Source: Bacillus subtilis subsp. subtilis str. 168 (GTDB lineage: Bacteria; Bacillota; Bacilli; Bacillales; Bacillaceae). Taken from it: DNA of 64,000 bases. The position numbers and the translations under genes are program-made. How positions within the stretch are numbered: position 1 is the stretch's first letter; the number at the start of each line of letters is the position of its first letter. Shown one piece after another: positions 40,063 through 43,553 of this stretch. Under the pieces are notes generated by a model. The model was not told where the DNA came from and ran no database searches. It was given only the letters and a program-made list of their open reading frames with translations. The stretch is from contig NC_000964.3 in NCBI RefSeq assembly GCF_000009045.1, positions 992,001 to 1,056,000 of the forward strand, read 5' to 3'.

Positions 40063-41397
40063 TTATGCTTCCTGCTGGTTAGCTGTCTCCAGAAGTTCTT
40101 CTTCTTGAAGCTTTTTCACTTCAATATATGCGACGTGGTGGCCGTCAATTTCATTAATGATGAATTCGCAGCCCTCTTCGATGATGGAATCATCTTTTTC
40201 AACATCGTATTTTTGAGTAAGGAACCAGCCGCCGATTGTATCGACTTCTTCGTTCTCTAAATGGATGCCTAGCAGGTCGTTTACTTGGTCAATTAACACT
40301 TTTCCGTCAAGAATATAATGGCCTTCGCCGATTTTGCGGATTTCGCTAATTTCATCAATATCAAATTCGTCGCGGATTTCACCGACAATTTCCTCAATGA
40401 TGTCCTCAACCGTCACAAGCCCGGCAGTACCGCCGTATTCATCAGACAAAATGGCCATGTGGACCCTCTCTTTTTGCATTTTGACAAGCAGGTCTTGGAT
40501 CGGCGCAGATTCAATGACATGAATGATAGGGTTGACGAATTGAGAAATGGTGGAATCAACAGATACCTCACCGCTGATGCAGGCGGTCAGCACTTCTTTA
40601 ATGTTAATAACCCCGATAATGTTATCTTTATCGCCCTCTTCCACAGGGTAGCGGGTATATTTTTCAATCTGAATGATGTCCATCATTTCAGAAATCTTGA
40701 TATCATGCGGAAGGCTGACAATTTCGGTCCGCGGAATCATAATTTCTTTCGCGAGCCTGTCGTCAAATTCAAAGATTTTATTCACATATTTAAACTCTGA
40801 TTGGTTGATTTCACCGCTTTTATAGCTTTCAGACAAAATGATTCGCAGCTCTTCTTCTGAGTGAGCCAGTTCGTTTTCTGAAACGGTCTCCAGGCCAAAT
40901 GCTTTGGTCAATAACCGTGCGGAATTGTTCAAAAGCCAAATGAATGGGAACGCGATGCGGTAAAACCAAATCAGCGGTTTCGCAAACAGCATAGACACTG
41001 CTTCCGCCTTTTGGATAGCGACTGTTTTAGGTGCAAGTTCTCCGACAACAACGTGTAAGAACGTGATAATGGCATACGCAAAAATAAACGATATGACATG
41101 TGAAAGGGAACCTGGAACGTTCATTTGGACGAAAAGCGGGTGAAGCAGCCTTTCGATCGTTGATTCACCTAAAACCCCTAATCCGATGGAAGTCAATGTA
41201 ATTCCGAGCTGACACGCAGATAAATATTCATCAAGATGCGTGGTCACTTTTTTTACGGCTATTGCTGCTTTATTTCCTTCCGCGATCAGCTGATCGATCC
41301 GTGAGCCTCTGATTCTGATAATGGCAAACTCAGATGCCACGAAAAATGCCGTCAGGGCGATTAAAACAGCAACTAAAATCAAATTCACTATGTCCAA
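40063..41397 (-). CDS. yhdP: CNNM/CorC-family (DUF21-CBS-CorC) Mg2+ efflux protein (MpfA)
   Basis: [20 protein letters not shown] and DEYGGTAG motifs; TTG start. Confidence 0.94.
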
Positions 41398-41457
41398 TTA
41401 GAACCTTCACTCTAGCAATGAGAATGAAGGTAACACCTCCTGTTAGATAAAATGGTT

Positions 41458-41889
41458 TTAACTTAACAGCAGCATAAATGATTGGAACACGGCGAGCTTT
41501 TCAGGCGGGAGTTTGCTTTTCAGCTTGTCACGATCCTCGGGCTTCAGCCGTTCAAACCGATGCAAGATTCCGGAGATGTTTTGATTCATATGATCAATTT
41601 CTAATGCCAGATTTCCAATTTCATCATCAAGTTTAGCTGAAGAGGGAAACTGGTTCTCCAGTCGATCTTTAATATCGGACAGGGCCAATCGCTGCTTCTT
41701 GCAATCTACAATAAATATAAGTCGTTTGAGTGCATTTTCGTCGTAGTAACGGTAATTTGAACAGGATCTGGCCGGCGTAAGCAGACCGAGATTCGTATAA
41801 TAATCAACTGTCCGTTTCGTTACTCCGGCGAGTGCCGCTAGTTCACTGATGCGATAAGTCTCAGCCCCATCTATATCCCTCCCAACCAT
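41458..41889 (-). CDS. yhdQ: MerR-family regulator (annotated cueR); translational start doubtful
   Basis: YRISELAALAGVTKRTVDYY..GLL MerR HTH; in-frame ATG 41889 has no SD (see findings). Confidence 0.8.
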   Translation of the reverse strand: MVGRDIDGAETYRISELAALAGVTKRTVDYYTNLGLLTPARSCSNYRYYDENALKRLIFIVDCKKQRLALSDIKDRLENQFPSSAKLDDEIGNLALEIDHMNQNISGILHRFERLKPEDRDKLKSKLPPEKLAVFQSFMLLLS

Positions 41890-42045
41890 CACGTTATAGT
41901 TATGAGAATAGTTTAATATATGAACGGTGTCTTGCACAAGTTTATTGTTTTTTTTAGACCGGAATTGGAAGTTGTGGAATTCATCATCTGATTGAAGTAA
42001 CATAGGAAGATAGAATTTTCAAATTTTTATATGCGGAAGGGACAG

Positions 42046-43377: not shown

Positions 43378-43553
43378 TTTTGGAATGAGTTGTGTTACAA
43401 TAAAATATACAATTTATAATCAAACTTTGACTTTTGGAGGTGGTATGATGGGGCCCTCTGCTTAGGCAACAATACACCGCGTACCTCAATGTTAAGGAAA
43501 AATGATTATATCAGGAGGTGACTCCTTATCCTTTGTTGAGAGGATAGGGTTAA

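Follow-up and report, generated by a model that had tools for sequence, protein, structure and literature searches.

A conserved out-of-frame start in Bacillus subtilis yhdQ points to programmed −1 frameshifting of the ribosome at codon 2

The −1 frameshift of Escherichia coli dnaX (A_AAA_AAG) is stimulated by a Shine-Dalgarno (SD):anti-SD helix some 10 nt upstream of the shift site, and the mRNA slips back during translocation. The −1 frameshift in B. subtilis cdd is helped by an upstream SD-like sequence. It is a slip of a single tRNA, documented at CGA_AAG (Mejlhede, Atkins & Neuhard 1999, as cited in PMC5009743). The prfB frameshift, which produces RF2, is obligatory, widely conserved and SD-stimulated, and occurs early in a regulatory gene that is not visible as a single open reading frame (ORF). 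The AUU start of infC (IF3) is an unusual, conserved start feature that ties expression of a regulator to translational fidelity. Here we describe a locus that recalls each of these systems: yhdQ, which encodes a MerR-family protein next to the Mg2+ exporter gene yhdP (mpfA), in a 64-kb stretch of the B. subtilis subsp. subtilis str. 168 chromosome (NC_000964.3, positions 992,001 to 1,056,000; hereafter the window). Coordinates are those of the window, and features are on the minus strand unless stated otherwise. The only SD-served start codon of yhdQ is out of frame, and comparative analysis suggests that decoding of the gene depends on a programmed −1 frameshift, conserved in the family, at codon 2.

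The start region of yhdQ reads ...AACTATAACGTGATGGTTGGGAGGGATATAGATGGGGCTGAGACTTATCGC... on the minus strand and contains the following elements.

41877 to 41883, minus strand: SD sequence GGGAGGG (core GGAGG, 41882 to 41878), with a proposed double role in initiation at ATG 41870 and in stimulation of a −1 slip
41877 to 41871, minus strand: 7-nt spacer GATATAG
41868 to 41870, minus strand: ATG served by the SD, +1 relative to the MerR ORF
41865 to 41868, minus strand: candidate slip site G_GGG, with the 0-frame codon 2 GGG at 41867 to 41865 and the −1 codon GGG at 41868 to 41866
41838 to 41870, minus strand: 0-frame mini-ORF MGLRLIASVN*, 10 codons followed by TAG at 41840 to 41838, the expected product without a shift
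41458 to 41868, minus strand: MerR-family ORF in the −1 frame, from the GGG of the shift site to a TAA stop; predicted product M + GAETYRISELAALAGVTKRTVDYYTNLGLL..., 137 aa
41887 to 41892, minus strand: in-frame GTG (41892 to 41890) and ATG (41889 to 41887), both without an SD and both inside a palindrome that is described below

The first G of the −1 codon GGG at 41868 to 41866 is the last base of the ATG at 41870. The MerR frame runs ..GTG ATG GTT GGG AGG GAT ATA GAT GGG GCT GAG ACT TAT CGC.., which translates as ..VMVGRDIDGAETYRISEL.. A preliminary description of this locus, made from the sequence alone, had noted that ATG 41870 opens only a 10-aa peptide ending at 41838, and that one extra G would place this ATG in the MerR frame and yield a typical MerR N-terminus. 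Translation of the minus strand bears out both points. Gene callers choose ATG 41889 as the start of a 143-aa in-frame ORF; there is no purine-rich SD upstream of this ATG or of GTG 41892.

The string GGAGG-N7-ATGGGG occurs twice in the window, against 0.02 occurrences expected from shuffled sequence. In one genome such a match could be due to chance; it goes beyond chance because it is kept in every homologue examined. One genome per species was scanned, giving 72 loci, and 32 species of the B. subtilis group were aligned together with the window. All 33 sequences carry ...GGAGG-N7-10-ATGGGGC[T/A]GAG, and in each of them the SD-ATG-G4 unit is out of frame by +1. The stretch from the promoter region to ...ACTATAACGTGA[T/C]GGTT...GGAGG...AGATGGGGC[T/A]GAG is almost invariant across the group and is better conserved than the coding region that follows, whose wobble positions vary freely. 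The in-frame ‘start’ differs by clade because its distance from the SD-served unit varies: the spacing between GTGATGG and GATGGGG is 18 nt for the subtilis clade, 19 nt for both the atrophaeus/amyloliquefaciens and the licheniformis clades, and 21 nt for the pumilus clade. The counterpart of ATG 41889 is ACG in the pumilus clade, and the amyloliquefaciens/atrophaeus and licheniformis clades have it out of frame. The in-frame start that is available, in no case with an SD, is ATG or GTG in the subtilis clade, TTG in the atrophaeus/amyloliquefaciens and licheniformis clades and GTG in the pumilus clade. As evidence for an intact gene, the preliminary description had envisaged orthologues that share the G4 and use ATG 41889; the G4 is indeed kept, and ATG 41889 is not conserved.

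The shifted layout extends to about 135 distinct homologues from Bacillus, Priestia, Peribacillus, Brevibacillus and metagenomes, which provide 110 distinct start regions and 134 distinct sequences for codon counts. It is present in Peribacillus, Priestia, Robertmurraya, Compostibacillus, B. infantis and others at 37–45% identity, and in Brevibacillus laterosporus and about 65 further distinct metagenomic loci. Across 73 genome sequences and these metagenomic loci, an ATG, TTG or GTG in the +1 frame is followed by GG[G/A] and lies 14, 17 or 20 nt before the K/R-I-G-E-L-A motif. In the 110 start regions the shifted start codon is TTG (67), ATG (41) or GTG (2), and codon 2 of the 0 frame is GGA (63) or GGG (47). 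A GGAGG-like SD, matching in at least four of five positions, precedes the shifted start by 6–10 nt, mostly 7–8 nt, in 101 of them. The 0-frame ORF has 3–31 codons, most commonly 5, and neither its length nor its sequence is conserved.

Many relatives lack an in-frame start altogether. Between the last in-frame stop and the helix-turn-helix (HTH), no canonical in-frame start is found in 36 of the 110 start regions; 18 have one solely downstream of the shifted start, and 56 have some upstream in-frame start. In several homologues a stop codon in the MerR frame lies between the SD and the start: L087, GGAGGGGAATAAATTGGGAAC, reads GGAGGGGAA TAA ATT GGG, L085 reads TGA TAC GAT GGG and Priestia reads TAA AGG AGG TGG TAT TCT GAT GGG. 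The longest mechanical ORF in Priestia megaterium begins MAHVTKRT, within the HTH. Public gene calls (P0189–P0239) assign the same orthologue 121, 122 or 127 aa in Priestia, where an ATT start (MGELAEMAHV) is among them, and 123, 126, 131 or 143 aa in Peribacillus butanolivorans. Such disagreement would be expected of a gene that lacks a proper in-frame start. From these comparisons it appears highly probable that recoding of some kind is needed throughout the family. Two more distant members of the same TxDYYT...GLL subfamily, neither with a CNNM gene downstream, have ordinary starts. L154 reads GGAGAAGGTGAAAAG ATG GGA AAA ACT TAC CGA, an SD-served start in frame with MGKTYRIGQL, and L156 reads ATG ATG ACA GGT TAT, giving MMTGYRIGEL. 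The predicted shifted product of yhdQ, MGAETYRISEL, has the same N-terminal form as these outgroup proteins.

Judged by codon usage, the constraint at the start is on the nucleotides and not on the in-frame residues. The in-frame codon over the shifted start is GAT, ATT, GTT, TTT, AAT, CTT, CAT, TGT or GGT, encoding nine residues; it ends in T in 134 of 134 sequences and its middle base is never C. As a control, at three conserved Y-ending codons of the same genes C is used in 19–23% of sequences. The in-frame Gly codon that comes next is GGG in every one of the 134; two other invariant glycines use all four codons (GGT 27, GGG 14, GGA 9, GGC 8; and GGC 26, GGT 17, GGA 9, GGG 1). The codon after this Gly encodes eight residues and always begins with a purine, so that codon 2 of the 0 frame is always GGR. 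Parsimony, applied to a tree of the protein sequence beyond the start region, requires at least 16 changes in start-codon type, at least 12 between GGG and GGA, at least 31 in the overlapping in-frame codon and at least 32 in the following codon. The pattern is never broken, and the shifted start with its GGR is never lost. The homologues thus present the parts of a −1 frameshift site with re-pairing of a P-site tRNA: an xTG_GGR sequence in which the −1 codon is GGG in 134 of 134, a conserved main ORF in the −1 frame with a short 0 frame and synonymous-site constraint, and a GGAGG 9–13 nt before codon 2, where a 5′ SD-like stimulator would be expected at about 10–14 nt. An invariant G at +8 after the start, seen in the first 52 sequences, was discarded as a candidate element; it is T in a subclass described below and probably reflects a Glu codon.

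Based on these observations, we suggest that yhdQ is decoded via a conserved programmed −1 frameshift at codon 2, a reading to which we assign a probability of roughly 0.6. The 30S subunit would bind the only SD, GGGAGGG at 41883 to 41877, and initiate at ATG 41870. A Gly-tRNA, presumably the UCC isoacceptor, would decode GGG at 41867 to 41865. As the first translocation takes place, or just after it, the SD:anti-SD helix would still hold, now at 10 nt from the P-site codon; the mRNA would slip back by one base, and the Gly-tRNA would re-pair with GGG at 41868 to 41866. Translation would continue in the MerR frame to give MGAETYRISEL..., 137 aa, and ribosomes that do not slip would terminate after 10 codons with MGLRLIASVN*. 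The layout of the sequence, its conservation and the lack of in-frame starts in many relatives are direct observations. We infer that the frame change is ribosomal and that it is −1 rather than +2, and likewise its timing, its efficiency and the dominance of this route in B. subtilis. Gly-tRNA with the anticodon UCC reads GGA and GGG and is, as far as is known, the only one to do so in B. subtilis. The invariant purine would be explained by this, because the UCC tRNA re-pairs perfectly on GGG, which the GGY-reading GCC tRNA could not. On the sequence evidence, a −1 slip of Gly-tRNA from GGR to the overlapping GGG is the simplest event that would satisfy every invariant.

The spacing agrees with what is known of SD-stimulated slippage. 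In the family, 9–13 nt separate GGAGG from the shift codon, and in B. subtilis 10 nt. With deacylated tRNA, back-slippage of the mRNA in vitro amounts to 50–70% if a strong SD lies 9–14 nt from the P-site codon, and dnaX −1 frameshifting falls on shortening of the spacing from 10 to 7 nt (bioRxiv 10.1101/2020.04.16.045807). The heptamer G_GGA_AAG is described as highly shift-prone (PMC5009743).

Several observations weigh against a frameshift at codon 2. Only one tRNA can re-pair and there is no tandem X_XXY_YYZ heptamer; such sites are usually inefficient. B. subtilis, like roughly half of the family, has a GTG, ATG or TTG upstream in the MerR frame. No consensus 3′ stem-loop or pseudoknot was found with RNAalifold in 103 distinct sequences from −12 to +90. 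Such an element is not obligatory at SD-stimulated bacterial sites. The yhdQ start region also matched no known RNA family in Rfam. Because neither a conserved 3′ structure nor an Rfam match is present, the initiation SD would be the sole stimulator. L153 (TAG ATG GAT GGG) has an extra in-frame ATG at usable SD spacing beside the shifted start, and may be a natural revertant to normal initiation. Finally, there is a ‘−14’ subclass (L073, L090, L096, L117, L139, L142, L157), in which the shifted start lies 14 nt before the anchor motif and the N-terminus is one residue shorter. An in-frame TTG or GTG lies 9 nt after the shifted start in 11 of 12 of its sequences, and the subclass may initiate there as a second route. 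Its upstream palindrome also differs, being of the ACTGTACAGT / AACGTTTGACTGTAC type. We further note that in L155 an in-frame TTG abuts the SD (L155 1490–1510; the L153 site is at about 1480–1500).

The alternative that survives best is that YhdQ starts at the SD-less in-frame ATG 41889 or GTG 41892, with the out-of-frame SD-ATG serving as a decoy or mini-ORF that holds levels low. Little protein suffices for a transcription factor, gene callers choose this start, and in-frame ATG or GTG codons are present in the B. subtilis clade, as are upstream in-frame starts in the 56 relatives counted above. We consider this reading unlikely: it is possible for B. subtilis itself and cannot be the solution for the family. 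The start is not conserved even among near relatives, as its ACG and out-of-frame counterparts show, and the relatives that have no in-frame start, or a stop after the SD, could not use it. The tree that retains the shifted start throughout requires at least 20 gains or losses of an upstream in-frame start. In B. subtilis, moreover, the start would sit within a palindrome near the 5′ end of the transcript, with no SD. Two further elements lie in this region.

41915 to 41920, minus strand: putative −10 TATATT of the yhdQ promoter, the best TATAAT-like hexamer, 13 nt 5′ of the palindrome in the B. subtilis group
41884 to 41901, minus strand: 18-bp palindrome AACTATAACGTGATGGTT, probable YhdQ operator, overlapping or just 3′ of the transcription start

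The palindrome AACTATAACGTGATGGTT matches AACYATMACGTKATRGTT with no mismatches. Within 75 nt upstream of the start, AACYATMACGTKATRGTT is found with at most three mismatches in 115 of 136 distinct upstream regions, and in perfect form (AACCATCACGTGATGGTT) in Priestia. A TATAAT-like hexamer lies 2–14 nt upstream of the palindrome in most regions, including those from other genera. Modulo 3, every possible value occurs for the distance from palindrome to start (58, 40 and 17 regions), and the stretch between them therefore behaves as an untranslated leader, contrary to an in-frame start inside the palindrome. The half-sites vary independently at the Y and M positions, as expected of a DNA site. 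In an RNA hairpin this variation would create C·A and A·C mismatches, so a DNA operator fits better. The palindrome at 41901 to 41884 is probably an autoregulatory operator that overlaps the transcription start, as far as its position indicates, and the in-frame GTG 41892 and ATG 41889 would then be by-products of the operator core (CACGTG/GTGATG) in the 5′ untranslated region. The preliminary description had correctly placed ATG 41889, without an SD, inside a palindrome, although its coordinates for the palindrome were off by one. The palindrome itself is real and kept family-wide; as the site lies downstream of the likely −10, it is probably not an operator of the MerR-type spacer kind.

Other promoter arrangements were considered for this region. 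A scan for consensus promoters found no canonical sigma-A −35/−10 pair. If the right half of the palindrome were the −10 of a MerR-type promoter, the transcript would be without an SD. An extracytoplasmic function-type reading, TTAAAC-N17-CGTG, was rejected, since the licheniformis clade does not keep its AAC. A block CAATAAACTTGTGCAA at 41931–41950 (minus strand), 5′ of the likely −10, is conserved group-wide in the B. subtilis group and fits no sigma-A −35 at the usual spacing.

A second alternative keeps the SD and the NTG GG pattern and places initiation directly in the MerR frame, without a slip in elongation, either at a non-canonical codon such as GAU, AUU or GUU or with the A site set one base back. 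The known rare start AUU is indeed the in-frame codon in 35 of the 134 sequences. The other 99 have GAT, GTT, TTT, AAT, CTT, CAT, TGT or GGT, which are not known initiators, and neither the invariant GGG nor the purine after it would be explained, whereas re-pairing of the tRNA explains both. We regard such initiation as improbable.

The chance that YhdQ is made by termination and reinitiation, with the mini-ORF translated and a restart at an in-frame codon beside its stop, appears slight. An in-frame TTG or GTG overlaps the mini-ORF stop (TTGA or GTGA) in L033, L040, L062, L087 and L089; most relatives have TTA, CTA, CTG or TAT there, so only a minority fits. In B. subtilis the TAG at 41840 to 41838 lies inside helix 1, and many codons follow without an in-frame start. 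Nor does the 0-frame ORF resemble a leader peptide or upstream ORF, since its length varies over the range given above and its sequence mirrors the overlapping MerR codons.

Runs of three or four G are far below the lengths known to slip in replication or transcription. That yhdQ is crippled in this strain by homopolymer slippage, or has a phase-variable G run, as the preliminary description proposed from the frame restored by one extra G, or that RNA polymerase adds the G, is the least probable explanation of all: the run is G4 in the window and all 32 other B. subtilis-group loci, which refutes a strain-specific slip, and G3 or G4, invariant within clades and never with the extra G that would restore the frame, among some 135 distinct homologues, while the gene is under purifying selection, with its layout present in all lineages and its HTH and C-terminal helix kept down to 34% identity, and yhdQ mutants have a phenotype (PMC9334652). 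The comparative data support the third possibility raised there, that the gene is frameshift-regulated, as a conserved property of the whole family.

YhdQ is a member of the MerR family by its MerR-type HTH, which scores above the gathering thresholds: residues 12–79 of the 143-aa ORF match MerR_1 (PF13411) with 61.4 bits (cutoff 21.6) and PF00376 with 46 bits (cutoff 28.2). The PF13411 match begins at residue 12, the Tyr of TYRISEL. Scores against the CueR equivalogs are far too low (39.6 against 147.4 bits for TIGR02044 and 23.1 against 244 for NF007590), and YhdQ reached none of the NCBIfam equivalog cutoffs. The old name ‘cueR’, which the preliminary description had also used, is therefore unsupported by the sequence. 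Like the metalloregulators CueR, ZntR and MerR, YhdQ combines an N-terminal winged HTH and a dimerisation helix with a palindromic operator. In contrast to them, it scores far below the equivalog cutoffs and belongs to a distinct subfamily, of the TxDYYTxxGLL...SNYRYY type and linked to CNNM exporters, and it has the palindrome 3′ of the likely −10 instead of in a 19–20-bp spacer between −35 and −10. Of 156 loci with a shifted-start MerR gene, 141 have a CNNM homologue directly 3′ of it on the same strand. In B. subtilis this homologue is the following gene.

40063 to 41397, minus strand: yhdP/mpfA, CNNM/CorC-type Mg2+ exporter gene (Pfam CNNM, CBS and CorC_HlyC), directly downstream of yhdQ and its operon partner

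In L155 a Zn_peptidase_2 (PF04298) gene lies between the MerR and CNNM genes, and in L156 a gene of this family follows the normal-start MerR gene.

Induction of mpfA by Mg2+ has been reported not to require YhdQ, a protein described there as being of unknown function (PMC10221552), so that the role of YhdQ as regulator of Mg2+ efflux, assumed in the preliminary description, is doubtful. Suppressor mutations that confer Mn tolerance include mutations in yhdQ (PMC9334652), and YhdQ is listed among the transcription factors of the nucleoid fraction (PMC3082553). Because of these two findings, yhdQ is not a dead gene in laboratory strains. The frameshift might itself be a sensor, conserved across Bacillales, in which free Mg2+ (or polyamines) sets the efficiency at codon 2 and the output of YhdQ reflects Mg2+ in the cytoplasm and tunes the co-transcribed CNNM exporter MpfA. 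Both kinds of cation stabilise SD:anti-SD and codon:anticodon pairing, hence the dependence that this idea presumes, and the polyamine-sensing frameshift of antizyme would be an analogue of such a translational cation sensor. We hold this role to be a speculative one, with the odds well against it.

Two further features were observed near the exporter genes. The second GGAGG-N7-ATGGGG match of the window lies at 43436–43460 (plus strand), about 100 nt upstream of yhdT, a CNNM paralogue. Its mini-ORF is ATG ATG GGG CCC TCT GCT TAG. In the leader up to 43553 (plus strand) it is followed by two hairpins, AGGAG 43513–17 with CTCCT 43522–26 and TATCCT 43527–32 with AGGATA 43541–46; mini-ORF and hairpins together look like a structured regulatory leader. 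Between yhdQ and yhdP, at 41426–41442 (minus strand), the hairpin GGAGGTGTTACCTTC contains a strong SD-like sequence, AGGAGGTG, from which no start codon is suitably spaced. For yhdP itself, which starts at TTG 41397, the SD is only a weak AAGG. The intergenic hairpin might contribute to the control of mpfA by Mg2+ that does not depend on YhdQ.

If decoding proceeds as proposed, no programmed frameshift could lie earlier in a gene than that of yhdQ, at codon 2. Frameshift finders that look for two overlapping ORFs of some size would not detect the site, as its upstream ‘ORF’ comprises only two codons, and because of this other cases may hide in well-studied genomes. YhdQ, and with it hundreds of orthologues whose annotations disagree (121–143 aa), would be given a corrected N-terminus, which is relevant to purifying, tagging or deleting the protein. 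The proposal would also link translational recoding to a Mg2+ export operon and give a concrete hypothesis for the role of YhdQ. As the locus is in B. subtilis 168, it is open to direct test by ordinary genetics.

We found no earlier description of a frameshift in yhdQ or at a second codon in the literature searched, which included part of a 2016 frameshifting review. A −1 frameshift at codon 2 that is stimulated by the initiation SD and on which a whole family of regulators linked to Mg2+ exporters depends would apparently be undescribed. It would differ from each of the systems that it resembles. In dnaX, a tandem-slippery heptamer deep in the ORF is served by its own internal SD and by a stem-loop 3′ of it, and both products are useful; yhdQ would rely on a single tRNA at codon 2 and on the initiation SD, with no conserved 3′ structure, and its unshifted product would be a peptide of 3–31 residues. 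The shift in cdd occurs near the end of the gene at a low level and is probably incidental, whereas that in yhdQ would be obligatory and is kept across genera. The prfB shift is +1, at codon 26, with the SD 3 nt from the shift site and autoregulation through a stop codon; yhdQ has no stop at the shift site. Finally, infC has a non-canonical start that is in frame, whereas the start of yhdQ is canonical and out of frame.

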